Source: Selaginella moellendorffii (lineage: Eukaryota; Plantae; Lycopodiophyta). From it: a stretch of DNA of 64,000 nucleotides. Below are positions 12,953 through 50,350 of the stretch, piece after piece (position 1 is the first letter of the stretch; each line of letters starts with the position of its first letter). The stretch lies in NCBI RefSeq assembly GCF_000143415.4, contig NW_003314367.1, positions 186,001 through 250,000 on the forward strand, read 5' to 3'. A program made the position numbers and the translations under genes. The notes under the pieces are model-generated. The model was not told where the DNA came from. It made no database searches and worked only from the letters and a program-made list of their open reading frames with translations.

Positions 12953-12984
12953 CGATCTTATACAGCGCTAGCCTACAGCTTCTA

Positions 12985-13969: not shown

Positions 13970-13973
<4 letters not shown>

Positions 13974-14036
<63 letters not shown>
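13974..14036. repeat. (TA)n microsatellite
   Basis: Perfect TA run. Confidence 0.99.
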
Positions 14037-14037
<1 letters not shown>

Positions 14038-14149
14038 CTAAATATAAACTATAATATAAACATAACTCTTCTCAATTTGTTTCATGAAGACTTGTTTCCA
14101 CCAGTCAGTGCCTCATCGTCAATGAATGCATTGTTATACAGTGACGTGA

Positions 14150-16537: not shown

Positions 16538-16690
16538 TGTCACGTGGACCCATTTTTGGTACCACGTGTTGCGGCTGCCCTCTCAAGCAGCCTCGACCCA
16601 CGTTCTGACTTGAACTTTCGAGCTCAGATTATTAACCGCGCGGATGTAACGGGCGACTTTAGGTTTAACACATTTTAGGGTTTGGCGGCT

Positions 16691-17773: not shown

Positions 17774-18228
17774 AAACTGATCATTATCCTTAATATTGAT
17801 TAATATAGAAATGTGAATATCATATTAGTCCCTCATCAAAGCAACAAAGACAAACTTTTGCAAGCGATTTCAACTTTTGCATTTCCGTCACACAGCCTTG
17901 AGTTCCTTCTTGAAAGTCCGCAAGTTTGAGGAGTGAAATCAAAACAGCCAACTCCATTCGGAAATAAACTGTTACAGAGAATCCTTGAAAAGCGCAGAAA
18001 TATCACATGTTCCTTTACCATACAAAGCAATTGAACCCATTGGCAGCTCCAAAGGGTCTCATCCACCTACAAGAAAGTACCAATTAGACACTGCCAGGCC
18101 ACGTTCATGTCTATGTTCTTGCCCGGAAAAAGACTTACTATCAGAAGCTAACGACATTTATTTCCGAAGATCCGAATCAGAAAAAAAATTCCTGAGAAAA
18201 AAAAAGAACAGTTCATCGTTTCTATGAA

Positions 18229-18697
18229 TCACTGAACCAGCAGCAGCGCCACTTTGCGCTTTGGACACGACCTGATCAAGCCATCCAAACCCTGATCCAG
18301 TATTTTAAAAGCCGCACAAAATCTAGATCTGACAAATGCTTACCTGATAAAGGGATGTGGAACAGTCGACCATGACTTGGTTGTGGGCTGCTATAACATC
18401 CTCCTTCACTGCATCGTGAAGTGCCTGAAGGTCCTTCTTGATTGCAGCACACATAGCCGCAACATTCACTGCCCCAGCCAGGGAACCAAAGTCCTCCTTC
18501 AAGGCACCATGGATCTCATGCACATCCTCCCTCACTGCCACACGAATGCCAGAGGCCATCACCTGGAGATTCTCAGTCACGACTCCCATGCTTGCACGCA
18601 TGGCAGATGCCAACACCAGCACACAAGCTGTGGTCACGATGCATAGCACACTGATCGCAATGGTGTTAACAAGCACCATGGCAATCAAAAACTCCAT
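18229..18697 (-). CDS. Small TM + 11-residue-repeat coiled-coil protein (family E, subtype 1), 2 exons, open
   Basis: MEFLIAMVLVNTIAISVLCIVTTACVLVLA..REDVHEIHGAL-KEDFGSL..KKDLQALHDAV-KEDV; 52-nt GT-AG intron 18292-18343; exon 2 GLDGLIRSCPKRKVALLLVQ*. Confidence 0.6.
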
Positions 18698-19110
18698 CGC
18701 CAGGCTTTGCAGCAATGAAATCAAGCTTTGATCAGGGTTTGCAGCAGCTATGCAAAACGCAAATGACGCTTACCAGAATTTCGAGCCACCCGCCCTATCT
18801 TCACAAGAACCCTAAGCTAGCGGTCCCTTTTGAAATAAAGGCGATGTTACGTAACTGGCGTGGGCCGCCCTTCGTACACTGCTCTGGCGGGAACTCGAGT
18901 TCCTTGTCAGTGGTACGCGGCCTCGATGACAAGAGGAGGAGGAAGAGGAGAAGAATGGCGCCCCATCTCCTCGGCTTCCTTCTTCCTCATGGTTTTCCAG
19001 GTATGAGAGTGATCCTCGGAATAATCTCGTGTTTGACAATGTAGATGGATGTGTAAGGAAAATGTTTCTATTCTTCGTTAACTAAGACCTCGAGAATTTT
19101 TTTACAAAGC

Positions 19111-22100
19111 TCACATTTGCAGTGCCTCAGAGAAGCGTTCTCTCAGCCGCTCCACCTTGAGCACCGACGAATGCTGTTTCCCAAAATATGTCCGGAAGTT
19201 GTCGATCAGTATCCTAAGATCGTGTGACACCGCCATCACGCTACGATAATAGTTGTTCTCCATCACGTCCATGGAGATTGGTAGCGCAATCCTGCATTGT
19301 TTGAAAACCTTTAGCTTCTTTCTCAATCGCAAGAGATTTTTCCAACTTGCCTGTCAAGAAAATCCGGCTTGCTCACGGCCTGCTGCAACCTCCACAAGCC
19401 ATACTCGTCCTGTGAAAAGCAAAAGCTCGTCAACCCAAGACCAAAACCGAAACATTCCTCGAGTCTATGATCGATCGCACAAAAACAAACCTTGGATTGG
19501 TTCGAGTGGAGCACCTGAGCAGCTCACGCACCTTGTCCTGCTCGATCTGTGGCGACTCCCAAGTTAAAGGATTCTCAACGTCGTGAAGCTCCCAGGGGCA
19601 GTGGTTCGTCGTCGATGGCTCGTCCTTGTACAGCACACTGATGCTGTCCCAGGGGCTGTTTGGAAACTCGGGCGACTTTCCCTTCACCTGAGTTATCGTC
19701 CCTTCCCACCAGCGACCACCTTCTTCCTCGTCCGACCTCCACCACACTTGGCACTTGTCCCGACTGGACCAGTTCCTGGCCATGAAGGCCTCGTAGCGGC
19801 TTCTCTCCACTATAAAGTCGGCGAAGTCTGTCAGCTCCGGCAAGTCGACGCTGAAGCTGCTGCCGCGAATCCTGTGCCCGTCCATGAACTCGAGAGTCAG
19901 CCGGCAAGAAGTGTTCCCCAACACTTCGAGAATGATGTACTCCAGTCCGGTGATCTCGCAGAACTCGACCGCTTGCAGTTCCCTTTTCACGCTTCTCCAG
20001 GGACCATCGTCGTCGAGCCGCTTGTTGTCTAAGTAGTCTTGATGTCCCTGCGATCGACAGTTTCAATTCAAACATAATTCAAGACAAGCTCGTTGGATCT
20101 CTTACCTGTCGGAAGTACACCACCTCATCACCATACTGTGGGATGTAGCGTGTCCGCTCCACCTCTGTCAATTGTAACCAGGACACGTTGCTCGGACTCC
20201 GATGCACCGTGCTGAGGTTTCTCCTCACGTGGAAATCCTTGTACCTCGACCCAACGTTCTTCTGCAGCTTCACTTTCAGTCTGCTCGAAGTTCTTCTTTC
20301 GGGCTTTCGGCGTCCATCGTCGTCGCTGCTTCTATCCCAGTCCGAGTCGTCGTAAGACGAGCTAGCTTCCCAGTGTGAGGGACGGCCGACGTTTCTCCTC
20401 CTTCTTGTGGACCTGCTGTTGGAGAGACTAACCACGCGAACCCTGCGCCAGCCGTGTACTTCTCCTGCGGCCACCTGAAGCGTGCTCGTCGGCCTCATAA
20501 CACTCGGTCTTAGTCGCAACTTTGCGAGGCCTTCTCCTTGAGTAGACGGCCTTGTTCATATTGCGCTTCATTTGTATATCGTCCACGTCCTGCCTGCTCT
20601 TCCTCGGGCTTGTAAGCATCCTCCAGCGACTCACTGTTACTGCCTGGTGAAACCTCTTCGTGGTAATCAGGGTCATTGTCAGCATCTGGAGCTTCTCCAT
20701 TCTGTAAGGACTCATTGCTCATAGAGTGTGATTCTGCTCTCGTCTCTGCTGTTCGTCAAGGTAGTCAGCTGAAAGAGACCTCTCCGACTCGGACTCGCTA
20801 ATGATCGCCCTTGCCACCACCTTTGTGTCTCCATTTTCTACACGAGTCGCTTCAAGGCCTTTCTTGGTATCACAAGGAACGTCTACCAGTTTATCCTCTT
20901 CGGAGCTGCTGCTGCTGCTGTGATAAGGCATGCGAGCACGCTTGGCTGCTTTCCCCTTCTTCCATATGTATCCCTGTTTGTCGTCAGACGAAACAGCTTC
21001 AGTGGGATTCTCGTCCGCGATAAAACCATCTGTTTCTGGATGCTCATGATTTGGCCTTCCGGTGTACTCGTCCGCCCACATTCTTGCGTCCCAAACCTGT
21101 TCCAACAATTGTTAGAAATATAAAAAGTCCACTTTAAATGCTTACTCTGGCAAGCTTGTCCGAACTCCCAGTGACTAAGTATGAGCCATCTGCATTAAAC
21201 GCACAGCACTGAATCTGATTTGTAGCCTGTGCTCGATTCTCAGCTCCTGCTGCTGGAAACAAGCTTTTAGAAGACCAAAAAAACATCGGCAGACTCTTTA
21301 CATTCGGGCTCGACATCCGGCTTCGGCATGTAGACACGTGAATTGACAGAGGTTCCGTCTTCAGGTCGGGGACTAAACTTGATGGCCGTTACGTGGTCAC
21401 GAAGTGTTGCAACCGGAACACCATCTGGTAATCCCCACTAAAGGCAGAAGCAAAACGAATCAAAACAAAAAACAGGAGGAATCGTTAGAAGCTGATGCAA
21501 CTAAAGTGTTCGAACTACTTACAGACAAATCGGCTATCTCCCACAAAAAAGCCAGGTTTTTAAGCACAGTGATCGAAACCAAGGTTCTTGCATAGTCCAA
21601 ACCTCCGCAGCTATGAAGGCGAAGCCTATTTCTACTGCGATGCATTGCAAATTCACCACCAAGTTCGAGAGCATGAACGTGGTCAGCTTGCCAATGCATT
21701 TGTTCTATTCGCTTCATAGAGATACTTGTAGCATTTCTTTGCTCCGCTGCCAGGAGTTTGCTCGGATCAGCAACGGCAAGATTCGAAAAGACAAGGCTTA
21801 CATTCCAAAAGCGAGAATGCTCCTGATCCCGAAAGAGTAGGAACGTCCGCGGCAGTTAACTGCTTGGACACTTTCGCATCACGCGAACACGCAGTTGCTG
21901 CAAGAGCTTGTTGTCAACGTTCTTACACCTGCAAATCATCTTCTTGTCAACATGGAAAACCAATAAAGGACTTCGCGACACACAGTACCTCCGCAACTTG
22001 CACGTCGCGGAGTGGGAACGACAAACATCGTCATTTTCATCAGCGGTGGGCGTCCCATTCCTGGAGAAAAATTCATGGTACCTCCGGGGCAAGAACTTGT

Positions 22101-22215
22101 GCTGTAGGAACTCGTTCCAGAGCTGGCCAGTGGCTCTCTCGCAAGGGCCGCGACTCAGGAAATGCATGATAAAGAAATGGAGATCACCTCGATCTCCTCG
22201 TTCAGCTCTCCAGGT
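19111..22215 (-). pseudogene. WD40-bromodomain (PHIP/BRWD-like) pseudogene copy with large internal deletions
   Basis: MHFLSRGPCERATGQLWNE, CCAFNADGSYLVTGSSDKLARV, RYIPQYGDEVVYFRQ, DFIVERSRY..WSSRDKCQVWW..SPW, bromodomain ENNYYRSVMAVSHD; frameshifts. Confidence 0.9.
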
Positions 22216-22502
22216 TTCAGGTCCAAGCTTTGATTGAATCGTGTTCCGTTATCATACAAAGCAATTGAAGTGTACCCAGTGAAATCCGGGTCTGCTGAAT
22301 AAATAGTTACACTGATCCACCTACAAGAAAGTACTATTAGACACTGCCAAGCCACGTCCATGTCTATGTTCTTGCCCGAAAATGACTTACTATCAGAAGC
22401 TCAAGACATGAGTCATTTTATTTCGAGGAAACGAAGATCCGAATCAGAAGATTTTTCCCTGTCGAAAAACAAAACAGTTTTGTCGAACTTCCTATGAATC
22501 AA

Positions 22503-22937
22503 CTACCGATCACTGAACATGGTCAGCAGCAGCAGCGCCACTTCTGTGCGGTTTGCACACCACTGGATGATCAAGCAAATAATTTCAAGATTCGCACAAG
22601 CCAGAACTTCACAAATGCTTACCGGATTAGCTTGGCCCTTGGCTGCCTCAGCTCGCAGAGCATCTCGCAGCATCCTCAGTTCCTCCCTCAAGGCACCAAA
22701 ATCCTGTATCACCTGCCTCAGGCTGGGAAGGTCCGCCTTGAGAACTCCACGGAGAGCCTGCAGATCCTCCTTGAGAGCTCCACGGAGAGCCTGTAGATCC
22801 TCCTTCGCTGCTCCCCTGGTTGAAGAAGCCATGGTGATGACGCTCTTGGTGAGGAGGTTGATGATGAGCATGGTTGCAATGCAAGTTGCCGCAATGACAA
22901 CACAAGCACCCGCGACCGCCACAATCACAACATCCAT
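22503..22937 (-). CDS. Small TM + 11-residue-repeat protein (family E, subtype 2)
   Basis: MDVVIVAVAGACVVIAATCIATMLIINLL..KEDLQALRGAL-KEDLQALRGVL-KADLPSL; exon 1 is open and ends at a conserved GTAAGC donor ~22622. Confidence 0.6.
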   Translation of the reverse strand: MDVVIVAVAGACVVIAATCIATMLIINLLTKSVITMASSTRGAAKEDLQALRGALKEDLQALRGVLKADLPSLRQVIQDFGALREELRMLRDALRAEAAKGQANPVSICEVLACANLEIICLIIQWCANRTEVALLLLTMFSDR

Positions 22938-23069
22938 GGAAGCTGCGGAGACGACGAACCCTAGATTTTACATGGAGGGAAAACTTGCTCACACTAACCC
23001 TGGCTATGGCGGACAATTTTCTTAAAAATTGTTTAAAGAATCGCGTTTTTTTGTTTATTTGAGTTTTTT

Positions 23070-25007: not shown

Positions 25008-26616
25008 TCAAGATTCGTATGTGCTTGAGAGCAGCACGTAACAGGACGAGTTCGTTTCATCCAACTTCTGTACTTGTTGAGCAAGCTCATCTGCATTCAG
25101 CTTCGTTTGGTTATTCCCATGAGTCTTGTATGCGCTAAGAAGCTGAGTCCAAGCAACGGGACTAGGATGGAAGGGCATGTTGTGAATCAAATCCTGAGCT
25201 TCAGCCAGCCTTCCTGCTCTTCCCAGATGATCGGCGATGCAGATGTAATGCTCAGCCATGGGATCAACACCATAGTCGTTTCTCAAGCTCACAAAATACG
25301 TCCACCCGTCTTTCAGCTCCCAGTGACAACAAGACGAAAGCACCGCGATGGAGGTGATTCCATCCGGTTCAACTCCATCCAAACCCATCTCCTTGAAGAG
25401 ATCCAGAGCTAGCAGGCCATGACCACTCTCTGGATATGCAGATATCATCGCACTCCAAGACACCGTGCGTCTTTCAGGCATCGCATCGAAGATCCGACGA
25501 GCCTCCTCCAGACTGCCGCACTTCCCATACATTGTCAGGATCGACGTCGAAACCGGCTCCAACGCGCTGAATCCGGCGGGGACGGCTTCGGCGTGGATCA
25601 GCTTCCCGACTCTGAGCAACGAGACCGTTGCACAGGCGTCGAAGATCGTAACGAAGGTGATCTCGTTGGGTTGCAAGCCTTCAAGATCCATCTTTCGAAA
25701 CAACGCGATGGCCTGCTGATTATGCCCGTTGTGCGAATACGCCGGAATCGTAACGTGCCAGGAAACCACATCTCTGCAAGGCATCTGATTCAAGACATCC
25801 ACAGCTTGATCAACCAGTCCGTTCTGAGCATAGGCTGTGACCATTGAGTTCCAGGTCACGACATCCCTCTCAGGCATCTTTTCAAACAACACCCTTGCCT
25901 CACGTAAATGACCGTTTTGCGCATACGCTCTAACGATCGTCGTCCACGATACGACATTCTTCTCCGGCATCGCATCAAACACCATCCTCGCAAGTCCCAA
26001 ATCGCCCTCCGAAGCGTACGCAGCTACGATCGTGTTCCTGGCGATGAGATTCTGCTGAGGCATTCCGTCAAACAAAACCTTTGCTCGAGCGGTGTCGCCA
26101 TTTTGAGCATACGCGGAGATCATCAGCGACCACGAAACCAGATCTCTCCTCGGCATCTCTTCGAACAATGTCTCGGCCTCGCGAAAACGCTTCGTGTGAG
26201 CGTAACCAGATATCATCACATTCCAACAGATCCTCAGCCTCTTCACTGTAGGCTTCCAGCATTGTCGTCCAGGAAACCACATTCTTGATCGGCATCTTGC
26301 CGAAAAAAATCCTCGCTTGCAGCAACTGACCATTCTCTGTATATGTACGGATCGTGATGTTCCAAGTGAACGCATTAGGCTGTTTAACACTATCGAACAC
26401 GTCGCGAGCATCAGGCAAACTCCCGCATTTCCCGTACATCTGAACGAGCAGATTGCAGAGGACTGTGTTGTTTGTTTGCCAGGACGCATGGATCTCTCTG
26501 TGAAGTTGTTTCCCTCTGGCTAAGTCTCTGGTAAGAGCGCAGGATTTCAGCAGCGAGACGTACAGAGCTGGGCTGATGGTGGTGCTAGAAACGCACATCT
26601 CTGTCAACTGAATCAT
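25008..26616 (-). pseudogene. PLS-class PPR gene with E-domain region, frameshifted
   Basis: MYGKCGSL..A..FD and repeated RDVVSW/KNVVSW motifs, HYICIADHLGRAGRL..MPF.P..AW..LLSA, SSCYVLLSS. Frameshift and deletion near 26230-26250. Confidence 0.88.
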
Positions 26617-26649
26617 CGATCTTATACAGCGCTAGCCTACAGCTTCTAT

Positions 26650-27338
26650 CTAAACTGGTTTTGCGACTTCCATATCAACAATCCGGCTTGTTTCGTCAGT
26701 GCTCGTCTTCTTCTTCGGTTTCTTCATGCCGCTCATGTAGACGGACAAGTAGGCAATGCTGAGCAGCAAAGTGACGAGTGTAAAAGCAGCACCCACAACA
26801 CTCACGCCTTGCAGAACAGTGCTGCAACCAGATTCTTCAAACCTTTCCACTTGATAACTGCTGAGGCTGACCGCCGTGTTCAAGAAGATCTCAGCGATCA
26901 CGAAAGAGATCCTGCCATTACCACAAAAGTTGATCTTTTAAATAAATGATTTGTTGTTTTTTTTCTTTTGCTGAAAATACCAGGAAAGAGTGAGGAGGAT
27001 AATTGCAGCGATCTTGCGTCCGTGTCGATGAAGCGACGAAGAACAGCAAGTGCATTTTGTGGCGGCTGTGGCGGTGATTTGGCCAAGAAGCAAACACACG
27101 GCAGCTCCGATAGCTGATCCGCTTGCTACCCCTCCTCTCTTGGGAGTGCATCTGATTCTGGTGTGATCAGATGAAATCTCGTCTTGAATGGTTTCCTACA
27201 GTCAGAAAACGTGAATTCAAGGGCGACGTGAAGGCGGCTTACATGATAACTTGTGGACGAAGAACCGACTGAAAGGCCGAACGCGAGGAGATCCAACGCT
27301 AATGTAAATGCAGCAGCGGGATAAAGAGATAACCTCAT
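26650..27338 (-). CDS. DUF1218-family multi-pass membrane protein (3 exons), apparently intact copy
   Basis: Exon 1 MRLSLYPAAAFTLALDLLAFGLSVG; exon 2 ..CIPKRGGVASGSAIGAAVCLLLGQITATAATKCTCCS..IILLTLSW; exon 3 ISFVIAEIFL..CSTVLQGVSVVGAAFTLVTLLLSIAY; GT-AG junctions. Confidence 0.72.
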
Positions 27339-27783
27339 TGAAACTCTTGCAACTGGGAATGAATCAATTGAAGCAGAAGCAGAGTAAAGGGAGACATTGT
27401 CGGTGAAGTTAAGCAACGTGAGTTAGTATTTAACATATAATTAACAAAATGTTCGCAAAACACATTACGTAAAACCTATTCTATGAAAATAGTCAACTCT
27501 ATGTTTTGTTACATTCCACTGAGGAATGTTGTCACGAAGAGTGGCGGTCAAGCTATGTTTCTATCTTCCTCCTGCCGAGTGTATGGGGAATTCTAATCGG
27601 TACATAATATTCTTTTCCATACAAAGAATATTCTGGTGCGGGTTCTAACACAAAATGGAAGAGGAGGTAAATAACGCTATGTACGCTATGTATTTATTTA
27701 TCTTTAATAATAAGTTAAATATGTATAATAATAAATAAAGTTGTGTTTATTTATGGAATATGTCAAATTTATAAAAATATTCA

Positions 27784-30265
<2,482 letters not shown>

Positions 30266-30385
30266 TGTCACGTGGACTCATTTCTGGTACCACGTGTTGC
30301 GACCCACGTCGGAGCTTCTATTTTACCAACTTTCGAGCTCAGATTATTAGACTTTAGGTTTATCACATTTTAGGGGTTGGCGGCT

Positions 30386-31618
30386 ATGGCGGCTGAAGCG
30401 GTGAGGGAGCTGAAGAAATCGCTCAACGACGACGAGGGTTTCTTTGATAGGCACGAAGAGATGACTGATCTGCTCACACAGATTGAGGGAGGCCTCAACC
30501 GCATCGCTGTAGTGATAGGCCCCAACGATTCAGGCAAGTCCGCTCTACTCAAGCAGCTCAGGAAGATGTGGGATGCCAGCCCTCTACTGAAAGCCCAGTT
30601 GCCGCTCTTCTACGTCGACATTGCAGACTTCAGTTCCCCGGAGCAGGCTGCTGCAGAGATTGCAAGACAGATGCGAACTTGGGCTTCTTGGCTCAAAGAT
30701 GTGACGATCGGAGGTATCAGTGTCGATCTGAAGAAGCTGACATTCAAGGGCGTAAACCATGATGCATCGAGCTTTCTAGAGCTGTTAAAAGCGGAGCCAG
30801 TGACGGACTTGGGCTCTGTCATGAGTTGGTTTATGAGCCTGGCAGCTGAAAACCAGCATAGGAGGCCAATTTTTGTCATCGATGAAGTTGACAGGTTGAA
30901 GCAGTGGTCTGACCAGGATGTAGGCACCCTCCTGGGATGTTTCATAGCCATGACCAAGCAGGACCGGACTGCTATGGTGATTATGTCCACCTCCGACGAC
31001 CTTTTTCGGCAGTGGTTCCAGAGTCATACAAACGTTCAACAGTGGAAGCCAGTTGCTGTGGGGCACTTTGGTGAAAAGAATGCAAAGGCATTCCTGTCAA
31101 GCCTCGTTGCCAAGTATATAGCAGCAGGTGCTACAGCTCCCGACTCGTGGTCGGAGCAGATGGTGTATGAAATCTGTGGCGGCTGTCCTTTAACACTTGA
31201 GAACTGTGTGATCGATGTGTTCGAGGAGGGAAGCAGCATGGAGGTGGTTCTCAAAGACATGGTGGTGGCAGAGCTGCCCAAGATTCTCCTGGGACTGGAG
31301 CATGGTCATGGCTGGGAAGAGGCTAACTTCAGGGAGGTGATGAAGCTCATTGTGGCGCATGGTGTAGTTGGGCTGTCAAAGATTTGCCGTTGTATCTTCA
31401 AGTCGGACATCTCGGAGTGCCAGCGGCAGATCAAAGCGATGCTCTCCTTCAATGTGATACATGTTCGTTACATGCCGAGGGGACTGGTTTATGATGATCT
31501 TCGAGACTTTGACAGGGGGCCTGCCATGAACTGTGATTTCGTCATGGCAAGGTCGCCTACCCACCATGTGGCTATGAAAATGTTTTGTGATGGTGTGTTT
31601 GACAAACCAGACGAATAG
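30386..31618 (+). CDS. Intronless STAND-class P-loop ATPase (ATPase_2/'archaeal ATPase'-like), 410 aa, only intact copy
   Basis: FFDRHEE N-motif, Walker A IGPNDSGKS, Walker B PIFVIDEVD, sensor strand MVIMSTSD, STAND GxP motif ICGGCP, winged-helix-like C-terminus; uninterrupted ORF. Confidence 0.85.
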   Translation: MAAEAVRELKKSLNDDEGFFDRHEEMTDLLTQIEGGLNRIAVVIGPNDSGKSALLKQLRKMWDASPLLKAQLPLFYVDIADFSSPEQAAAEIARQMRTWASWLKDVTIGGISVDLKKLTFKGVNHDASSFLELLKAEPVTDLGSVMSWFMSLAAENQHRRPIFVIDEVDRLKQWSDQDVGTLLGCFIAMTKQDRTAMVIMSTSDDLFRQWFQSHTNVQQWKPVAVGHFGEKNAKAFLSSLVAKYIAAGATAPDSWSEQMVYEICGGCPLTLENCVIDVFEEGSSMEVVLKDMVVAELPKILLGLEHGHGWEEANFREVMKLIVAHGVVGLSKICRCIFKSDISECQRQIKAMLSFNVIHVRYMPRGLVYDDLRDFDRGPAMNCDFVMARSPTHHVAMKMFCDGVFDKPDE

Positions 31619-31644
31619 AAACTGACCATTATCCTTAATATTAA

Positions 31645-32481
31645 TTAATATAGAAATGTTTTGCAACCTGTGATAAGCTTCGTTTCCATCCTGCAAGGAT
31701 CCCCGTGAATGTACATCCACAGCAGCAGCGCATGCCTTTCCGTCACAGCCTTGAGTTCCTTCTTAAAAGAATGCTTCGACTTGAAGAAGACGGGGCCCTG
31801 TGCTAAGGGGGGCATTTTGATCCGGACTTGCGTGACCAGCGCTTCCAGCAGTGATCTTCTGTCACCAAAGCTGAGCCTACCGAAACAAGCACCAGACCTG
31901 CTTTCTGATCTTCTCGAGCTGCACTCGTCGCCATCGCTGTTCTCCGCCATCAAACCCACGAGTGTGCTGTCTGGACTGATTGGCAAACGCTGCTTCTGCT
32001 CGGTGAGGTCCAGTAAGAGAACGTTGCAGTTGTTGCTCCTGGCGGCTTCAAATCTCCCGAGATAGCAGTAGTCGTCCCTGTCCCTTCCGTGGAGGAAAAA
32101 CGCTAGAGATCCGTCAGGAAGGCCGAAGATCTCAAACACCGGAGCCAGAGCAACCCGCAATCCATTCCTCGAGCCCCCACCGAAAGAAATCCCCAAGTGA
32201 CATAGAATAAGTTCCCCAGCTCCGGATTCTGATGCACCCAAATACCCACCAGATTCCTGACCCCGTTGATGAATCTGAACAGCGCCTTCTGCGACTGCAG
32301 CCCATTCCTCCAAGTACCAGCCTTGGCACTGCGGGAACCAGAGCTTATCAGAGCTGCAGACGTCTCGAAGCTTGCAAGAAGTGGCGCTGAGGTTGCAGAG
32401 ATCTCTGTGACAGACGCGGCTGGATATCAACCCGAACACATCGTCCGGAAGATCAGTCAACAAGCCGTCGTGATCTTCCAT
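31645..32481 (-). pseudogene. F-box protein (At5g39450-like) fragment, frameshifted and truncated
   Basis: F-box LTDLPDDVFGLISSRVCHRDLCNLSATSCKL..LW. The conserved GIWVHQNPELGNL..WGFLS lies in another frame. PVFEI..DGS..FFLHGR follows; C-terminus missing. Confidence 0.75.
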
Positions 32482-32864
32482 CAAGGAAAAAAACAAGCTC
32501 CTCGATCACGCATCAGAGGTAACATTATCAGAGGTAACAGCAGCGACAGGAACAGCCAGCCACCAAGCCAACTCCATTCGGAAATAAACTGTTACAGAGA
32601 ATCCTCGAAAAGCGCACAAATATCACATGTTCCTCTACCATACAAAGCAATTGAACCCAGTGACTATCGGCAGCTCCAAAGGGTCTCATCCACCTACAAG
32701 AAAGTACCAATTAGACACTGCCAGGCCACGCTCATGTCTATGTTCTTGCCCGGAAAAAGACTTACTATCAGAAGCTCACGACATATAAGCCTTTTTATTT
32801 CCGAAGATCCGAATCAGAAAAAAAATTCCTGAGAAAAAAGAGAACAGTTCGTCGTTTCTATGAA

Positions 32865-33301
32865 TCACTGAACCAGCAGCAGCGCCACTTTGCGTTTTGG
32901 ACACGACCTGATCAAGCCATCGAAACCCTGATCCAGTATTTTAAAAGCCGCACAAAATCTAGATCTGACAAATGCTTACCTGATAGAGGGATGTGGAACA
33001 GTCGACCATGACTTGGTTGTGGGCTGCTATAACATCCTCCTTCACTGTGTCGTGAAGTGCCTGGAGGTCCTCCTTGATTGCAGCACGGATAGCCGCAACA
33101 TTCACTGCTCTAGCCATGCTCAGTCCTCTCCTCCTTCAATGCACCATGTAACACTTGCAAATCCTCCCTCACTACCACACGAATGGATCCCATTCCTGCA
33201 CGCATGGCAGATGCTAACACCAGCACACAAGCTATGGTCACAATGCACAGCACATTGATCGCAATGGTGCTAACAAACACCATGGCAATCAAAAATTCCA
33301 T
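32865..33301 (-). pseudogene. Family E subtype 1 copy, disrupted
   Basis: MEFLIAMVFVSTIAINVLC..REDLQVLHGALKEE then stop/frameshift; same exon 2 as the 18229 copy. Confidence 0.65.
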
Positions 33302-33740
33302 CGTTAGTGTCCGTAACAACAAAATCAAGCTTTGCAGTAGTGAGATCGAAATCAAAGTTTGCAACAGCTATGCAAGACGCAAATGATGCTTACCAGAATT
33401 TCGAGCCACCCAAGCGGCCCTTTTGAAATAAAGGCGATGTTACGTACAATGGGCCATAGCCACTTTCTTAGTGGGCCGCCGTTCGTACAGTGGTCTGGCG
33501 GGAATTCGAGTTCCTTGTGCCACGATCAGTGGATTCTCGCGATTTCTATCAGTACGCGGGCTCGATGACAAGAGGAGGAAGAGAAGGATGGCGCTCCATC
33601 TCCCCGACTTCTTTCGTCCTCATGGTTTTCCAGGTATAAAAAGATTGAGAGTGATCCTCGGACTGATAATGTAGATGGATGTGTAAGGAATATGTTTCTT
33701 TTCTTCGTTAACTAAGACCTCGAGAAAATTTTTACAAAGC

Positions 33741-36700
33741 TCACATTTGCAGTGCCTCAGAGAAGCGTTCTCTCAGCCGCTCCACCTTGAGCACCGACGA
33801 ATGCTGTTTCCCAAAATATGTCCGGAAGTTGTCGATCAGTATCCTAAGATCGTGTGACACTGCCATCACGCTACGATAATAGTTGTTCTCCAGCCGCTCG
33901 CGAATCACGTCCATGGAGATTGGCAGCGCAATCCTGCATTGTTTGAAAACCTTTAGCTTCTTTCTCAATCGCAAGAGATTTTTCCAACTTGCCTGTCAAG
34001 AAAATCCGGCTTGCTCACGGCCTGCTGCAACCTCCACAAGCCATACTCGTCCTGTGAAAAGCAAAAGCTCGTCAACCCAAGACCAAAACCGAAACATTCC
34101 TCGAGTCTATGATCGATCGCACAAAAACAAACCTTGGATTGGTTCGAGTGGAGCACCTCGTCCACAATGTCGAGCAGCTCACGCACCTTGTCCTGCTCGA
34201 TCTGTGGCGACTCCCAAGTTAAAGGATTCTCAACGTCGTGAAGCTCCCAGGGGCAGTGGTTCGTCGTCGATGGCTCGTCCTTGTACAGCACACTGATGCT
34301 GTCCCAGGGGCTGTTTGGAAACTCGGGCGACTTTCCCTTCACCTGAGTTATCGTCCCTTCCCACCAGCGACCACCTTCTTCCTCGTCCGACCTCCACCAC
34401 ACTTGGCACTTGTCCCGACTGGATCACTTCCTGGCCATGGAGGCCTCGTAGCGGCTTCTCTCCACTATAAAGTCGGCGAAGTCTGTCAACTCCGGCAAGT
34501 CGACACTGAAGCTGCTGCCGCGAATCCTGTACCCGTCCATGAACTTGAGAGTCAGCCGGCAACAAGTGTTCCCCGACACTTCGAGAATGATGTACTCCAG
34601 TCCGGTGATCTCGCAGAACTCGACCGCTTGCAGTTCCCTTTTCACGCTTCTCCAGGGACCATCGTCGTCGAGCCGCTTGTTGTCTAAGTAGTCTTGATGT
34701 CCCTGCGATCGACAGTTTCAATTCAAACATAATTCAAGACAAGCTCGTTGGATCTCTTACCTGTCGGAAGTACACCACCTCATCATCATACTGTGGGATG
34801 TAGCGCGTCCGCTCCACCTCTGTCAAGAGTAACCAGGACACGTTGCTCGGACTCCGATGCACCGTGCTGAGGTTTCTCCTCGCGTGGAAATCCTTGTACC
34901 TCGACCCAACGTTCTTCTGCAGCTTCACTTTCAGTCTGCTCGAAGTTCTTCTTTCGGGCTTTCGGCGTCCATCGTCGTCGCTGCTTCTATCCCAGTCCGA
35001 GTCGTCGTAAGACGAGCTAGCTTCCCAGTGTGAAGGACGGCGACGTTTCTCCTGCTTCTTGTGGACCTGCTGTTGGAGAGACTAACCACGCGACCCTGCG
35101 CCAGCCGTGTACTTCTCCTGCGGCCACCTGAAGCGTGCTCGTCGGCCTCATAACACTCGGTCTTAGTCGCAACTTTGCGAGGCCTTCTCCTTGAGTAGAC
35201 GGCCTTGTTCATATTGCGCTTCATTTGTATATCGTCCACGTCCAGGTCCTCACTTGCCTGCTCTTCCTCGGGCTTGTAAGCATCCTCCAGCGACTCACTG
35301 TTACTGCCTGGTGAAACCTCTTCGTGGTAATCAGGGTCATTGTCAGCATCTGGAGCTTCTCCATTCTGTAAGGACTCGTTGCTCATAAGAGTGTGATTCT
35401 GCTCTCGTCTCTGCTGTTCGTCAAGGTAGTCAGCTGAAAGAGACTTCTCCGACTCGGACTCGCTAATGATCGCCCTTGCCACCACCTTTGTGTCTCCATT
35501 TTCTACACGAGTCGCTTCAAGGCCTTTCTTGGTATCACAAGGAACGTCTACCAGTTTATCCTCTTCGGAGCTGCTGCTGCTGTGATAAGGCATGCCAGCA
35601 CGCTTGGCTGCTTTCCCCTTCTTCCATATGTATCCCTGTTTGTCGTCAGACGAAACAGCTTCAGTGGGATTCTCGTCCGCGATAAAACCATCTGTTTCTG
35701 GATGACTGTCATTAGCCTCGGCCACGGGGACCTTAGAAGTGCCTTGTTCTGGTATTTCGAGGCTCCGAAAAGTATCCTCGTTGTTGGACGTTTGTGCACA
35801 GTTTCTCAACTTGAGTACTAACTTTCGCTGAGACCTTGGCCGCCTGCATTCACCCACGTCCGAAGTCTCTGCGGGACTCTTCTTCGGAGGTTCATCGTCT
35901 TCACGTTCCTGAGTTTTTGTAAGAACTTTCCCGTTGCGTAGAAGCCTCTGGTTCTCGTTCTCTCCAGATGTACCAGGTCTTTTGGCATCCTCAGCGGCCA
36001 GGTGGCGTGCTCCGTCGTCTTCGTACTCATGTAAGCTCGAAAACATGGTCAAGGCATTCCGAGCTGCCATCCTCATAGGCCTCAATGCATGGTCCGTGTT
36101 TGACTTTCTTATCAGACCTCAATATAGACTTTAGTTTCCTCATCGGCATCAAAAGTGCATTGTATGACTCCTCCAAGCGCCAGCGCTTTTGCTTCCTGAC
36201 CAAGGTCGCAAGTATCTGTAATGGATTATCAGAAACACAAAAACTTCACGTACATACCTTTCTCCTTCTTCGGGTACGAACCACTTCAGAATCTAATTCG
36301 TCATTTTCTTTGTCGGTTGTTTCCGATTCACAGATCGTACCACTTTCTTCATTTCCATCCTCGTCACTCAAGAAACTGGGATAAAGAAGTCACCGGCTTG
36401 AGTGACGAGTCTGGTTCTGACTACTGCGCGAGCGAAGAAAGCTCTCCGCCGGTTGTTCTACCCATCTGTTGCCTTGCTCGTTTGTTTGCTCAATCGCTTG
36501 CAGAGAAGAAACTGAGGCTTATCCTGAGGAATGAAAGCTGGATCATCAAACGTTCCCACTGCGAGCTGAACTGATGGTGGTTGCCAGTAGCAACCTAGGA
36601 GTCCCAGACGACGTTGCTGGTACGAGCTTTGATAAGGTTCTGGATAGGGAATCAAGCCTGAAAATGAAACAGAAAAATAAGTTGGCCGAGGTAAGAAGTC

Positions 36701-38570
36701 ACCAGCTTACTTGCATCGCACAAGAGATCTTGAAGATTCCTTTGATGAGGAGGCAACCGAGTTTCCTGTTAAAGAAAGACATTCAGTTCGCACAAGAATA
36801 ATACCGGACAGGAACAACACTCAGGACTAAAACTAAATAAAAGCACTTACATCATTTTATTTACCTGATCGAGAACGTTTCCAGAAAAAACAAAAATAAT
36901 AAATAATAAATGCAAAAACAAGAAGCTATTGGATGAAAGATAAAAAGCAAAATCTTCCTGATACCTGATCGTATTACGCACCTTCGTCGTCTTGACTACC
37001 AACGAGGTTCCATCCCTGAAAATTAGCAAACGTGAAATCCAGGATAAATGGATATGAGAGCAAGCATACGGTGAAAATTGTCATCGACAAGATTATAATC
37101 TCCAGTCTCATATGTTCTTACTGGATGGCCCTGCCAGATCTAAAACAATCAAGTGAAATTCGTCATCATTCTTTTGAGCGAACACACTTACATCCCAGAC
37201 AGTATCTCTGCCATCGTAGCCCGGACTCATTGCAATATGAGGATTGCATGGATGTACATCTGGCACGTAAGTCTCGGCAATCTGCACATCCATGTTATTC
37301 CATGAGAGCCCCATAAGATGTCTTTACCTTGTCATCCTTGAAAAAGTCGACGGAAGAAACTTTGATTGGCTCTGCACAACCACTGGAACAAAGGACGATT
37401 GATGTCAACAAAGACGCGAACCTGAACTGCACGTAGTTAACTTCTTGCGCCCCAAACCTGTTCAAACAATTGCTAGAAATATAAACAGTCCACTTTTAAT
37501 GCTTACCCTGGCAAGCTTGTCCGAATTCCCAGTGACGAAATATGATCCATCTGCATTAAACACACAGAACTGAATCTGATTCGTATCCTGTGCTCCATTC
37601 TCAGCTCCTGCAGCTGGAAACAAGCTTTTAGAAGACCAAAAAAACATCGGCAGACTCTTTACATTCGGGCTCGACATCCGGCTTCGGCATGTAGACACGT
37701 GAATTGACAGAGGTTCCGTCTTAAACTTGATGGCCGTTACGTGGTCACGAAGTGTTGCAACCGGAACACCATCTGGTAATCCCCACTAAAGGCAGAAGCA
37801 AAACGAATCAAAACAAAAAAACAGGAGGAATCGTTAGAAGCTGATGCAACTAAAGTGTTCGAACTACTTACAGACAAATCGGCTATCTCCCACAAAAAAG
37901 CCAGGTTTTTAAGCACAGTAATCGAAACCAGCCAGCCAGCCAGGTTCTTGCATAGTCCAAACCTCCGCAGCTACGAAGGCGAAGCCTATTTTCTACTGCG
38001 ATGCATTGCAAATCCACCACCAAGTTCGAGAGCATGAACTTGGTCAGCTTGCCAATGCATTGGTCTATTCGCTTCGTAGAGATACTTGTAGCATTTCTTT
38101 GCTCCGCTGCCAGTGGTTTGCTCGGATCAGCAACGGCAAGATTCGAAAAGATTCGAAAAGACAAGGCTTACATTCCAAAAGCGAGAATGCTCCTGATCCC
38201 GAAAGGGGAGGAACGTCTGCTTGGGAACTTTCGCATCACGCGAACAAGCAGTTGCTGCAAGAGCTTGTTGTCAACGTTCTTACACCTGCAAATCATCTCC
38301 TTGTCAACATGGAAAACCAATAAATGATTTCGCGACACACAGTACCTCGGCAACTTGCGCGTCGCGGAGTGGGAACGACAAACATCGTCATTTTCATCAG
38401 CGGTGGGCGTCCCATTCCTGGAGAAAAATTCATGGTACCTCCGGGGCAAGAACTTGTGCTGTAGGAACTCGTTCCAGAGCTGGCCAGTGGCTCTCTCGCA
38501 AGGGCCGCGACTCAGGAAATGCATGATAAGGAAATGGAGATCACCTCGATCTCCTCGTTCAGCTCTCCAT
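33741..38570 (-). pseudogene. WD40-bromodomain (PHIP/BRWD-like) pseudogene, most complete copy
   Basis: N-terminal FLIMHFLSRGPC, partial WD40 exons (DVHPCNPHIAMSPGYDG), IPYPEPYQSSYQQRRLG, acidic linker, RYIPQYDDEVVYFRQ, bromodomain; frameshifts and missing WD exons. Confidence 0.9.
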
Positions 38571-38909
38571 GTTTCAGGTCCGGTGAGTCTGCACGAGCCG
38601 TCAGCTAAGCTGCATGAACCCGTTGAAGACAGAAGCTTGAAAGCTTTGATTGAATCGTGTTCCATTATCACACAAAGCAATTGAAGTGTACCCAGTGAAA
38701 TCCGGGTCTGCTGAATGAATAGTTCACCTACAAGAAAGTACTATTAGACACTGCCAAGCCACGTCCATGTCTATGTTCTTGCCCGGAAATGACTTACTAT
38801 CAGAAGCTCAAGACATGAGTCATTTTATTTCGAGAAAACGAAGATCCGAATCAGAAGCTTTTTCCCTGTCGAAAAACAAAATAGTTTTGTCGAGCTTTCT
38901 ATGAATCAA

Positions 38910-39340
38910 CTACCGATCACTGAACATGGTCAGCAGCAGCAGCGCCACTTCTGTGCGGTTTGCACACCACTGGATGATGAAATAATTTCAAGATTCGCAC
39001 AAGTCAGAACTTCACAAATGCTTACCGGATTAGCTTGGCCCTGGGCTGCCTCAGCTCGCAGAGCATCTCGCAGCATCCTCAGTTCCTCCCTCAAGGCACC
39101 AAAATCCTGTATCACCTGCCTGAGGCTGGGAAGGTCCGCCTTGAGAACTCCACGGAGAGCCTGCAGATCCTCCTTGAGAGCTCCACGGAGAGCCTGTAGA
39201 TCCTCCTTCGCTGCTCCCCTGGTTGAAGAAGCCATGGTGATGACGCTCTTGGTGAGGAGGTTGATGATGAGCATGGTTGCAATGCAAGTTGCCGCAATGA
39301 CAACACAAGCACCCGCGACCGCCACAATCACAACATCCAT
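38910..39340 (-). CDS. Family E subtype 2 copy, near-identical to 22503-22937
   Basis: Same TM and KEDLQALRGAL repeats; small deletion downstream of the donor. Confidence 0.55.
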
Positions 39341-39516
39341 GGAAGCTGCGGAGACGACGAACCCTAGATTTTACATGGAGGGTTGCTCACACTAACCCTG
39401 GCTATGGCCTTCCGCGCGATTAATAATCTGAGCTCGAGAGTTGGTAAAATAGAAGTTCCGAGTCGGAACGTAGGTCGAGGCTTCTTGAGAGGGCAGCCGG
39501 TACCAGAAATGGGTCT

Positions 39517-41878
39517 TGGTATCAAAGAGACTAATTGACTGTTTTAATTTTCTTTAGTTTATTTTCAAACAGATGAACTGCGAAATGGGACGTCAATTCA
39601 AAACATGTTGGAAGATCCAGATTCCTTGCTGGCTACAAGTTGTTGTAAGCTAAACGAATGCTAATCTGTAGGAAGAGTTTTTCTTCCTGGCTAACTAGAG
39701 AACCTAACTGAAACTCTGGAGAACTAGTTTACCAATAGAGAGAGTTTGAAGAGCTTGAAAACCTGTAATGTGGTTTTGGAAATTCTTGGTTATTGGTAGG
39801 CTCGTAAAGGCCCTGGGTGAACCAGATAACCTTTAGTGTATGAGCTCCACAATGCTCAGATATGGAACTGAAGGTATTAGATTGTGGAAGCGTTGAAATG
39901 CAGGCATAACCGAAAGGCTTGGTGGAGTGAAACCACCTCATGTTTGGATAGAACTTGTCCCTGTGAGAGATGTGGATTTCTGGTTGTCCGAGTTTTTTTA
40001 TTATCTAGGATTAGTGGCTTGTGGGGGAAATAACTAACCGAATGCTAGTGAATATGCAAGTCACTGAAGGCAGCTGAAACTCTATTAGGTGGTTTTCATC
40101 AAAGAGTGTAATTTCACTTGGAGAAACAAGATGGTATGTCTTTTGGCAATTAATGGGCGAACGTGGTGGGTGGAGTACCAGTTGTTTTAGTACCCTATTG
40201 AGAGTGGAGAGCACTGACGCTACTAACCACTTAGTGCCAAAGGAACAAAGGAAACCTTGCAATGCGAATTAAGCTGAGTCTATTGTGCCTGGTATCTGGT
40301 TTATTAGAACTTGTGTAATAAGAGTTTAAATATTGACAAAATGAAATTTGTTGCCATTGAAAGAGTAATGGGACTTAGCATAGAGGTGGATGAAGTCCTC
40401 TTTTGCTTTGTTGATATATTACTTAATTGTTATCTATCTTCATAGGAGCGACCTCGGTGGGTGAAGAAGTACCAAATGCAAAGGAACTCTTGGTTGGGAG
40501 GTCTTAGACCTCCTTAGCAAGTTGTGAAAAAAGCTAATGGGAATGGCACTTGCAGGTCGAACAGGCAAGCAGTTACGTTGACGAGTTTATGGCCTGGTAT
40601 ATGAAGATGCACGAGCTAGATATGTACCAGAGGATGCGTGAGAACAAGGAGTTAGTGCGACAATTTTACATTCTCAGTTATTTGAGTTCGAAAAGAATGA
40701 CATTCAGGCAAGTCTTTAATTGGTTTCTTTATTTATATTTATCTATTTATGGTTTTTCAAATGGAAAAATGATGCACTCCCTGAAAATTTTGGATGTATG
40801 TGGAGCAGGCTCATGTGTGACATTAGCGATTTTGAAGTGTAGTACTGTCCTTTCTGGCTGGATTTCCTTCCCGGTGGCTGTCCGGAATGGGAGATGGCCA
40901 GCTACAAGATACACAAGTCAGCAAGATCGGCCACCAAGGGCAGCAAGGGCCAGGCTTTTTCTTCAGCCCCGTCGCCAGATCGGAAGAAGGTGATATGTTG
41001 AGGATGCTGATGCCAGAGAACGGAAACGGGAGTTGGGAAATCATTCATGCAGATTCAGGAAACCTTGCAGTCCAGTAGTACTTCAAAGCTGGGACCTTTT
41101 CCGCCAGGACTAAAGGAGCTTGAGGATTGGATTGTCAGTCACAGGTCAAGCTGAACTGTTCACTTTTTTGTGCAAAGTCTCTACCGAAATGTGTCCAGGG
41201 AGCTGTTCATCTTCTCATCATCGATTCGCCTACTAGATGCGTTGCTGAGCCGGGGGTGGTTGATCAGTATACGGAGTTCTCGGATGCTTTACTGAAGAAC
41301 TTGGTGAACCCTGCTTTCGGGATACTAGACAGAGCTGGCTACATGGTGGTGTTTGTGCTATCGGATGATTTGCCGGCTTTGAATAACACTGCAGAAACTT
41401 GCAAGCTGAAGTTCCTGCAGACAAACTACGTGCACACGGCAAGGTCCTGGGGATACCGTATTTTTAGAAAGGTTATTCTGAGTTAAATGGCGACCAGCAC
41501 AAATCGTTGATGTGGCAGGACTCGCTAACGTGGTGGGACTCGCTGATATGGCAGGACATGCTGATGTGGCGGGACTCACTGACACGGCAGGACTGGAGAG
41601 CAGAGGTAAAACAAACTCTGTGTTGAGTTAAGTAGCGGCCAACACAAATCGCTGATGTGCCAGGACTCCTGGAAAGGTAACTCATCCTTTCGAAATTGGT
41701 ACTTTTTAATGTGGAAAGCATCATTGCCATGTGTATTTTCGGTTCCCCCTACTCCAAGGTTGCAAAGAACAGGGACATCCTGAACACATGCTACACTCCT
41801 TGACGAGCCAGAAGATTTCCAGTTCCCATGGTATACTATTGTTTGTTAGCAGATAGCAGCGAAAATAGTTGAAGAGTT
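39517..41878 (+). repeat. Unclassified ~2.4-kb repeat (copy 3, inverted)
   Basis: Reverse complement of 14180-16535; begins tggtatcaaag. Confidence 0.75.
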
Positions 41879-41887
41879 ATGTTTATA

Positions 41888-44800
41888 CTAGCAATTGCCA
41901 GCAAATGCTGGGTGGTTGGCAAATTTGATGCCATTTGAAGAGGTTTCCTGAGCTTAGCTATGTTTGCTATTTCAACTGAAAGACATTCTCTTGACAAAAT
42001 GTGTTATAAGCATTATATAAGCTAGATTAGATCACTATTGAGTTGCATTCCTCCATTTTGAACACAAAAAGCCCAAAGAATACTTCCAAGTCCATCTTTG
42101 GTGCAGGTGTTGCTACTTGTTCCACAGCCCGCTAGAGAGGTTCCTGGGATGAGCTGAAAACCATTATATTGCAATGAGAGCTGCACTCAAGAAGCAATAG
42201 GATGAAAAGTATACTTCTGCCATTAGCAACTTAATAGCATGTTGCCATAACTAAAATGGGACACCATCCAAGGCACACCAGTCAATGCTAGCTTTGTTGT
42301 GGTGTGCACTTGAAACTCACAATTGCAAGTCAAGGGTGGCTGAGTAGATAGTTTTGTGGAATCATGGTTATATTTAGAATTGTGCCATGTATTTGTCAAT
42401 CTACTTAAGAATTTCAGCATAGACTGTATTCACAGTGTAAAAGTGTTGATCATGTGGTATAAGATTGCCTTGAAGGGGGGTTACAAGCACTTGAACACGA
42501 AGTTGTTCAAGTGATCTACACCTTGACAAAGCAACATAAAGTTGACCATGTGTGAAAACAAGTTGGGGGAGGTAAATGCCAACATGGTTGAAAGTTTGGC
42601 CTTGGGCTTTAGAAATAATTAAGCAATAACCCAGACGAACTGGGAATTGTCTTTGGGACATCTTGAAAGGGATTTCAATATCAGAAGATGTAAGGGTAAT
42701 ATGTGGAATAAAAACTCGCGATCCCTTGAATTGTCCCGTGATAATTTCACAATCTAAAACGTTTTGAAATGCTTGCTTGAGAATGAGGTGAGTGTCATTG
42801 CATAAACCAATTTGTGGAGATATGTTCCTAAGAAGAATCAAAATCACATTTTTTTTTAGAATTAATTTGTGTGGTGGTAGTCCCGATGGGGTGATTGAAT
42901 TTAAGAATTCAATTGGGAACTCTTTAGGGTGATATGAGTCAACCGTGTCAATGCTCAAATAAACATATGGATCACCTGGTAGTCTTCCAACAATGTTATT
43001 ATTTATTCTAAATGTGTCATCATTGAGTGGGGTGAGAATAACCTTTGATGTAGTTGTATAGGTATTTATAATATCATCGGTATTTGGGAAAACAAAGTTT
43101 ACAATAGGTGTAGAGATAGATAATGCATGTGGTATTTTGATAATATTTGGTGGGAGACATGGCAACTGCAAACTACTATCATCATTGCCAAGTTTGAGAA
43201 GCCATTCAGAAAAACAAAGATTGCTTGAATGCATATTCTTTGTTAGTGTTAGTGTTGTAAAAAGTGACCATAGTCTATTCATTTTAATTGAGCTTGAAAT
43301 AATAAAGGTTCTATGGCCATGGGGAACAACAGGAAAGGTTTGACGAAAGTCACCACTTGTAATCACTATAACGCCTCCAAATGGTTTAGAATTACATTTG
43401 AGATGCTTTAAACATTTATCAACCACAGAGAAAGCATGTGTGTGGACCATACTAATTTCATCCCATGTGAGAACATTTGCTTGTTTAATGGTTTTTCCAA
43501 TATCACTATTAATTGTTAAAGCAGAGACAGAAGTTTCATTTAAAGGAACAGGAAGTTTAAAAGTTGTATGTGTTGTTTGACCATATTTTAGCAAAATGTT
43601 TGCAATCCCAGTCCATGCCATACTGATTACTTTTATTTTTTAAAATTGTAATGCTGTAATGATGGTATTAAGTAGAAAAGTTTTTCCAGTACCATCAATA
43701 AAGAAACATTGATGTTGGTTAGTGTCAATGGCATTTATAATGAGTTCAAAAATATAACGTTATTCATAACTGAATTGATTTATGTTTGCATTTATTTGGT
43801 CTTGTGATGGGTCATGGATCTCTATATTAAGCATGTGTTTGATAATGGGAGTAAGAGTTGGGAGTGGTAAACCAAAATCACAATTAGATTTATTGTGTAG
43901 TTGGAATTTTGAATTAATATCGACTAAAACAATGTCAAAATAGTTTATATCATTTCTAGCATAATCCTCAAACATATCAATTTTGAATTGATCCCATAAT
44001 AGAATTGGATCTTTTGGTGAACAATACAAATAAATAAAAACAAATAATTGTCTTAATTGGGATGGCATTTTAAAAGTAGAAACTTCTTGCATGCAATGTT
44101 GCCATTCTGAATCATCTGCTAAAAGTCCCATTGCCATAACTACTTGTTTAAAAGAGGAGAAAATAACATCTTTGACAGTACATATATCCTCAAATGATAT
44201 AACACCTTTTTTATGGAATAATATAAACCACAAGTGGTACAACTCATTATTAGAAGGAGATATGGAATACATTCTTGGTATGAGTTTAGCTTTTCGCTTG
44301 TGTAATTGCCATTTATGAGAGGATTTGTTATATGTGTAATGTAACGAAATTTGAGCATATGTATATTGCCTTGCATTAATATATTGCATGTTTAAATTGA
44401 ACTATTGTGTAAACATTGTTCCATTTTGAGTGGCTCTTTCTAGTGCTTCTTGTTCATGACTTGGTTTGAAATAGACATTTTGAAAATTGGGTAAATGAAT
44501 TGGAAGGTGTATAATAGTTAGTGATTTATCATGCATACGAAACTTAAATATATGCCACATAGCTTCAGGAGCAGAAATATATCGAGCATCGACAAAACTT
44601 GAGATTTCATCCCAATTTAAAGTCCCTCGTTCTTCAGATGCAATTAGGAATTCTAATGTTGCACAATCATAACCTTTGTATACATATTGAAATAAATATT
44701 TAATACTTTTAATAGAAGCGCAGATCTCTACATTAATGTGTGCTTTATATTTTTTACAAAGGTATTTATTATAAGGAACAACCCATCTATTGTCAATAGT

Positions 44801-50157: not shown

Positions 50158-50350
50158 TGGTATTGGAGCAATGCCTGGGAGAGCAAGAAGAATTCGAAAC
50201 CGTAGGATCAGGGCGACACTTGCTAGGGTGAATCGGAGCCTCGACAGAGGCGTGCCCTAATCCAAACGCTCCAGGCCTTGCAAGAGGCACTGGACGACTA
50301 AGAACCTGGACCTAGACTTGAACGAGTGGTGGGATTGGGTGTCAGCACCC

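Follow-up and report, generated by a model that had tools for sequence, protein, structure and literature searches.

An intact and previously unannotated paralogue of the Selaginella moellendorffii “archaeal ATPase” family (Pfam ATPase_2) was found at positions 30386–31618 of the 64,000-nucleotide stretch of DNA analyzed here (the window). Taken as a whole, the evidence makes it likely that this ATPase_2 gene is old in the green lineage, has been constrained while its sibling copies decayed, is silent in the RNA sampled, and encodes a putative nucleotide switch. An uninterrupted forward-strand reading frame spans 30377–31618, with its first ATG at 30386 and a TAG stop codon at 31616–31618, and encodes 410 amino acids (ORF listing of the window). 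Window positions 15008–36063 are 100% identical to S. moellendorffii GL377671.1 (assembly GCA_000143415.2), which bears out the initial annotation in assigning the gene to a land-plant genome. When the gene calls of that assembly were mapped onto the window, none fell between 26063 and 34931, so that both the ATPase and an adjoining F-box ORF are unannotated. The predicted ATPase is a cytosolic-looking protein of 46 kDa, acidic overall (pI 5.4) and with a neutral winged helix (pI 7.2). A search against PF01637, proposed as a check by the initial annotation, returned a match well above threshold (E = 1.2e-16, 61.6 bits as compared to a gathering score of 33.2), covering aa 19–272 and HMM positions 1–223 of 225. 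A family match of this strength in an open frame of 410 codons rules out a chance ORF. The gene and the features of its product are as follows.

30386–31618, forward strand: intact, single-exon ATPase_2 (PF01637) NTPase gene, 410 aa (ORF listing and Pfam)
30431–31060, forward strand: nucleotide-binding (AAA+/STAND-like) domain, approximately aa 16–225 (model secondary structure and motifs)
30440–30460, forward strand: FFDR..E motif (FFDRHEE), aa 19–25 (motif location)
30518–30541, forward strand: Walker A, GPNDSGKS, aa 45–52 (motif location)
30869–30886, forward strand: Walker B, IFVIDE, aa 162–167 (motif location)
30983–31000, forward strand: sensor-1-like MSTSDD (motif location)
31073–31300, forward strand: helical lid domain, approximately aa 230–305, holding the GGxP motif (model and motifs)
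31178–31189, forward strand: GGxP motif (GGCP) within the lid, aa 265–268 (motif location)
31319–31588, forward strand: C-terminal winged helix, approximately aa 312–401, with a clade-conserved N.IHVR wing strand and SP....AM helix (model and alignment)

The FFDR..E, Walker A, Walker B, and GGxP motifs were thus all located in the frame where they had first been noted. All 60 aligned homologues match PF01637, and across them R22, E25, G45, P46, G50, K51, P161, D166, S203, and G265 are near-invariant; P268 is invariant in a nine-sequence alignment (alignment A1). Every family-invariant residue is kept in the query, and all residues for nucleotide binding and hydrolysis are present. No invariant arginine that could serve as an arginine finger follows sensor 1 across the family alignment. 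An MHD-like motif was not seen before the last helix in alignment A1; a clade-conserved histidine lies in the wing strand (N.IHVR). In several proteins of the lycophyte-fern clade (P0001, P0002, and P0005; alignment A1), the sequence opens with MG and then small residues, which may be an N-myristoylation signal; the query, starting with MAAE, does not have it.

Homologues align with the query collinearly and end to end (for example, query aa 16–399 with aa 27–410 of P0001; also alignment A1), indicating that the single exon encodes the whole protein. A larger spliced gene was considered and rejected, as homologues share the start and end points of the query and a paralogue elsewhere in the genome (L003:6001–7287, in S. 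moellendorffii GL377565.1) is likewise one continuous ORF, of 428 codons, that aligns full-length with the family despite a spliced GenBank model. That model, EFJ37611, is 340 aa long and omits the Walker B region; its intron is probably a modelling artefact. The neighbours of this paralogue include a kinase gene and a gene with an AvrRpt-cleavage (RIN4-like) domain. PF01637 was the sole Pfam domain of the query, and no TIR, CC, LRR, or any second domain was detected in the 410-aa protein with Pfam or NCBIfam; the absence of sensor and effector domains and of introns described by the initial annotation therefore holds, with a single-exon ORF and collinear full-length homologues. Pfam matches to NACHT (26.3 bits, cut-off 26.7) and nSTAND1 (21.9 bits, cut-off 27.1) were both sub-threshold, NB-ARC was absent from the Pfam results at E ≤ 1, and the NCBIfam orc1/cdc6 model TIGR02928 scored 11.9 bits against a cut-off of 181.3. 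NCBIfam and PDB sequence searches gave matches at the P-loop level only. PADLOC returned no defence-system assignment, its matches being confined to P-loop stretches of 20–30 residues at E = 7e-5 or weaker.

Structure prediction, likewise proposed at the outset, gave a confident AlphaFold model (60-sequence alignment; pLDDT 90.2, pTM 0.90) in which aa 2–401 form one unit composed of an NTPase (nucleotide-binding) domain, a helical lid, and a winged helix, with an insertion at approximately aa 106–140 modelled at lower confidence. The top structural matches were the archaeal ATPases PABY2304 (2QEN; Z 22.5 over 319 residues) and SSO1545 (2FNA; Z 21.1 over 321 residues), in alignments that cover aa 13–399. 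These stand about 4–5 Z units above the next family, and Foldseek matched solved ATPase_2 members at E ∼1e-10. Next in rank were archaeal ORC2 (Z 17.6), the wheat G10 resistosome (16.9), Cdc6/Orc1 (∼16.6), NRC4 (16.3), and RPP1 (15.6), while TnsC, CED-4, and mitoribosomal mS29 each matched the query model at Z ∼15. Among predicted structures of the ESM Atlas, ATPase_2 clusters from archaea, bacteria, and basidiomycetes were found at TM 0.70–0.76, and a feature search of the same resource placed a Streptophyta cluster near the query. The label “STAND-type” is accordingly fair for the fold but not for the family, since ATPase_2 gives the best matches in structure and in HMM searches and NACHT and nSTAND1 score below cut-off.

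Like the query, the two archaeal ATPases belong to PF01637, are 350–410 aa long, and show the three-domain architecture over the whole chain with no extra domains. In contrast, their sequence identity to the query is only 15–17%, and the query is eukaryotic, nuclear, of host-like composition, and carries the insertion at aa ∼106–140. As the archaeal proteins themselves have no established cellular role, what the match identifies is a fold rather than a function. NB-ARC and NACHT modules (NRC4, RPP1, CED-4) share with the query the core of nucleotide-binding, helical, and winged-helix domains, together with both Walker motifs and a lid GxP motif (Z 14.7–16.9 over 290–320 residues); unlike NLR and apoptosome proteins, the query is without an N-terminal executioner domain or an LRR, WD40, or TPR sensor, and no MHD-type motif was seen at the equivalent position. 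Orc1/Cdc6 initiators also share an AAA+ domain, lid, and winged helix (Z 15–17.6), but their family model scored far below cut-off, they differ from the query in its lack of a family-invariant arginine finger and in its acidic character with a neutral winged helix, and they are conserved and single-copy whereas the query family is multi-copy and fast-diverging. On the predicted model, therefore, the core of P-loop NTPase, helical lid, and winged helix is one shared with 2QEN/2FNA, Orc/Cdc6, and the NB-ARC of NLRs. Orc/Cdc6, NB-ARC, and TnsC proteins of this common fold switch conformation and assemble on ATP, and given that the motifs of the query are intact, we infer by structural analogy that binding of ATP would induce a conformational change and self-association, so that the ATPase would operate as a nucleotide-dependent assembly switch. 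With no effector or sensor domain built in, the protein would depend on separate partners. No conserved partner gene was found next to the ATPase at four other family loci, where the neighbours are unrelated.

The window is built of nested segmental duplications, approximately 10–13 kb long and ∼90% identical. The block at 12748–23010 repeats at 26412–39408, and further inverted duplicate pieces lie at 39411–41878 and 56026–60489. Duplicated blocks carry the 5′ end of a PPR gene, the ATPase, the F-box gene, and a spliced expressed gene, and one of the duplication breakpoints lies precisely at 30349/30350, a short distance 5′ of the ATPase start. The ATPase is consequently present three times in the window, as one intact copy (30386) and two broken ones (tblastn and blastn). 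The broken copies and the immediate neighbours of the intact gene are as follows.

16696–17770, forward strand: broken paralogue A, with its middle lost, an inverted internal piece at 17047–17316, and an in-frame stop (tblastn/blastn and arm search)
31645–32496, reverse strand: unannotated F-box ORF, 283 aa, PF00646 at E = 4e-7 (Pfam)
32737–34500, reverse strand: well-expressed spliced gene with short introns at 32926–32979, 33932–33992, and 34050–34132 (RNA-seq)
60538–61731, forward strand: broken paralogue C, 85% amino acid identity, with three premature in-frame stops and its middle replaced (tblastn/blastn)
60859–60999, forward strand: inverted piece within paralogue C, facing 61045–61188 (arm search)

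The F-box ORF and the ATPase gene are convergent, their stop codons only 26 bp apart, and the F-box ORF has been duplicated along with the ATPase in copy C (∼61.7–62.7 kb); their pairing thus reflects co-duplication. Between the duplicated blocks lie a PIF1-type helicase ORF typical of Helitrons (42401–43621, reverse strand) and a copia-type gag-integrase-reverse transcriptase (50318–53294, forward strand). Both broken copies contain inverted internal duplications (60859–61188 and 17047–17352) with arms that are 85% alike over ∼50 nt. Copy C includes a 25-nt perfect stem, as well as 31-nt and 25-nt perfect matches to the intact gene at 30927–30957. If transcribed, the inverted piece of copy C could give rise to small RNAs that target the intact gene.

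Pairwise dN/dS between the intact and broken copies was 0.35–0.45 (NG86), and 0.69 against copy A by YN00. On its own branch, the intact copy has accumulated 10 synonymous and 8 nonsynonymous changes (p = 0.002 against a neutral expectation of ∼1:3.6), as compared to 12/28 and 11/18 synonymous/nonsynonymous changes in the two broken copies; the contrast between intact and broken copies is not significant alone (Fisher p = 0.10). These counts, resting on 18 substitutions, provide modest evidence that the intact copy is under purifying selection.

Expression was surveyed in three stranded RNA-seq runs from one study with the same species label, with ∼12% of the reads sampled and mapped to 28600–34500 at ≥97% likeness. 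Across 30176–31751, which contains the ATPase, there were zero reads in the three runs. These runs did cover the F-box gene ∼130 bp downstream, weakly and on the reverse strand, and the spliced reverse-strand gene at 32.7–34.5 kb, to a depth of up to ∼120. The genotype sequenced differs from the reference, with many near-fixed differences at 32737–34500, so that some reads may fail the 97% threshold; the immediate neighbours of the ATPase were nonetheless mapped. In the sampled RNA, the gene thus shows little or no transcription. The initial annotation had named a gene that is “never expressed” as evidence against its reading; the three runs contain no transcripts, but a single study cannot establish “never.” Expression is probably conditional on stress, stage, or tissue, or is currently repressed.

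These observations invite the explanation that the locus is a silent young duplicate without present function, still free of disabling mutation and drifting toward the state of its neighbours. The blank RNA-seq result, the missing gene model, the position within a rearranged, transposon-rich duplication nest, and the broken state of copies A and C all fit such a gene, and the inverted piece of copy C, with its 31-nt perfect match, could feed silencing. However, 410 codons remain open where the siblings gained stops and rearrangements over equal time, the changes on the intact branch are skewed to synonymous ones, and all family-invariant residues are retained. We therefore regard a functionless duplicate as unlikely, while granting it more weight than the alternatives considered below. 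As both sibling copies are dead, the intact copy may yet follow the same path. The preferred reading remains a constrained ATPase_2 paralogue that is silent in the sampled RNA.

An exhaustive phmmer search of 1.84 billion cluster representatives yielded 131 proteins at E up to 1e-3, with a best identity of 32% and a top match from Logan run SRR6920663. A tblastn comparison with the Selaginella L003 locus gave 34% identity, and no protein of the collection exceeded that value. A word-index protein search with the single query protein gave no match, and with the nine-sequence profile it retrieved two Adiantum proteins only. Named relatives among land plants comprise many S. moellendorffii proteins and those of the ferns Adiantum nelumboides and A. 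capillus-veneris; green-algal relatives come from Coccomyxa, Myrmecia, Tetrabaena, Tetradesmus, Nannochloris, and Chlorokybus; and others from the stramenopile Tribonema, the fungi Puccinia graminis (a rust) and Diversispora epigaea (a glomeromycete), and a Chlamydiales MAG. Some further relatives come from metagenomic contigs that are sparse and eukaryote-like, and one from a contig that is gene-dense and looks bacterial. A family spread over green algae, one lycophyte, ferns, a stramenopile, fungi (rusts and glomeromycetes), and a small number of bacteria agrees with the patchy eukaryotic distribution described for it in the initial annotation. The Chlamydiales protein (P0023) and the protein on the bacterial-looking contig (L007) nest among eukaryote-like members, a placement that hints, at the level of sequence, at bacteria-eukaryote exchange somewhere in the history of the family.

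In the maximum likelihood tree, the query groups with six Selaginella proteins, both Adiantum proteins, and one transcript-like Logan contig (support 100/99). The clade of the query contains nothing else, in keeping with the earlier description of the gene as lineage-restricted. Within it, the query is sister to Selaginella P0006, P0008 (417146), and P0009 (424082) (95/90), and Adiantum is sister to Selaginella P0004/P0005 (100/98). Because fern sequences nest among Selaginella paralogues, the duplications are older than the separation of the lycophyte and fern lineages. Tracheophyte, green-algal, and second Selaginella clades fall on one side of a branch supported at 95/99, with fungal, Chlamydiales, and other sequences apart; this “green lineage” grouping is provisional, since several tree rows are metagenomic or Logan sequences without names. 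The closest relatives of the query are other plant and green-algal proteins, at 25–34% identity. Its composition (GC 0.515, GC3 0.61) resembles that of its neighbours, the F-box gene (GC3 0.60) and the PPR gene (GC3 0.575).

The suggestion that the gene was possibly acquired horizontally is not supported where recent acquisition is meant: its relatives are plant and green-algal, the fern is nested among Selaginella paralogues, and GC and GC3 equal those of host neighbours. The phylogeny proposed as a check in fact put the query in a plant and green-algal grouping, away from prokaryotes. Recent prokaryotic import was rejected on the tree and the host-like composition; judged by these sequence comparisons, the gene appears old in the green lineage, and recent import into Selaginella is not supported. 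A very old transfer is indistinguishable from ancient presence followed by later losses.

The family itself, its patchy range, and its presence in S. moellendorffii are already published. PMC6652019 gives a phylogeny of eukaryotic “archaeal ATPases” that includes seven proteins from S. moellendorffii, 26 from Asterochloris, and 12 from Galdieria, as well as members from Klebsormidium, Coccomyxa, Gonium, Rhizophagus, and Puccinia; it prefers multiple archaeal transfers and concedes that a single ancient transfer with losses is possible. The same paper, citing work on Galdieria, reports that archaeal copy number rises with growth temperature, repeats a thermotolerance hypothesis, and finds the largest eukaryotic families in the stress-tolerant Asterochloris, Galdieria, and Selaginella. 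PF01637 is also enriched in wheat rusts (PMC5295586). Our locus could on this basis be taken as one of a set of archaea-derived, horizontally transferred ATPases that aid heat or desiccation tolerance, for which the archaeal relation of copy number to temperature and the large families of stress-tolerant taxa speak (PMC6652019), and condition-specific expression would account for the blank RNA result. That support is purely correlative, however, and rust fungi and freshwater algae also hold the family (PMC5295586; PMC6652019). The tree moreover puts the gene with plants and green algae and not beside prokaryotes, which together with its host-like composition implies that any transfer was very old. 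We consider a transferred tolerance factor improbable, and prefer an ATPase_2 gene long resident in the green lineage.

A minimal NLR-like immune or cell-death switch, as first proposed for this locus, perhaps offsetting the small NLR repertoire of Selaginella, is speculation that we judge decidedly improbable. The nucleotide-binding, helical, and winged-helix core does superpose on resistosome NB-ARC modules (Z 15–17), NACHT and nSTAND1 matches exist below threshold, the family shows a birth-and-death pattern of deeply diverged paralogues and pseudogenes, some paralogues have an MG-type N terminus, and the sister paralogues 417146 and 424082 are listed as “putative NACHT NTPases” in PMC4773052. 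Yet the protein has no effector or sensor domain, no conserved partner gene accompanies it at four other family loci, PADLOC matches stay at the P-loop level, archaeal ATPases and Orc/Cdc6 match the fold as well as or better than NLRs, and no transcripts were detected in the three runs. In a fuller and very improbable version, the whole Selaginella and fern ATPase_2 clade would constitute a stripped-down NLR-like switch for immunity or cell death that works with separate partners and partly replaces the small NLR set, with the present locus silent until triggered or held in check by hairpin small RNAs from its dead neighbours. The least probable reading, and a far-fetched one, is that the ATPase travels with a selfish or mobile element or assists it. 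Such a role would account for the spread and intronless form of the family, and the idea draws on the resemblance to TnsC-type transposition ATPases (Z ∼15) and on the Helitrons and copia element within the window, but the ORF is flanked by neither a transposase nor terminal repeats, paralogues at 25–35% identity are far older than copies of an active element, and a discrete mobile element was rejected since the local copies are embedded in a ∼10–13-kb segmental duplication with host genes (F-box, PPR, and the spliced expressed gene).

The intact ATPase_2 paralogue that we favour belongs to the same species and family as the proteins published as “archaeal ATPases” or “putative NACHT NTPases” (PMC6652019 and PMC4773052), and 417146 and 424082 form its sister group. 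It differs from the published members in that no gene model exists at the locus, it occupies a deep, separate branch, and no protein exceeds 34% identity to it. New here are the unannotated member, the fern relatives and duplications older than the lycophyte-fern split, and the selection and expression data at the locus; the excerpted text of PMC6652019 and PMC4773052 makes no mention of Adiantum relatives or of duplications before that split. The locus alone makes the function of eukaryotic ATPase_2 proteins no easier to test. It adds a missing gene model to an ATPase_2 family that has been under-counted in S. moellendorffii at seven published members, and the nesting of ferns and the green-algal grouping speak for a family that the green lineage has long carried and seed plants have lost, rather than for one that Selaginella received by a transfer of its own.
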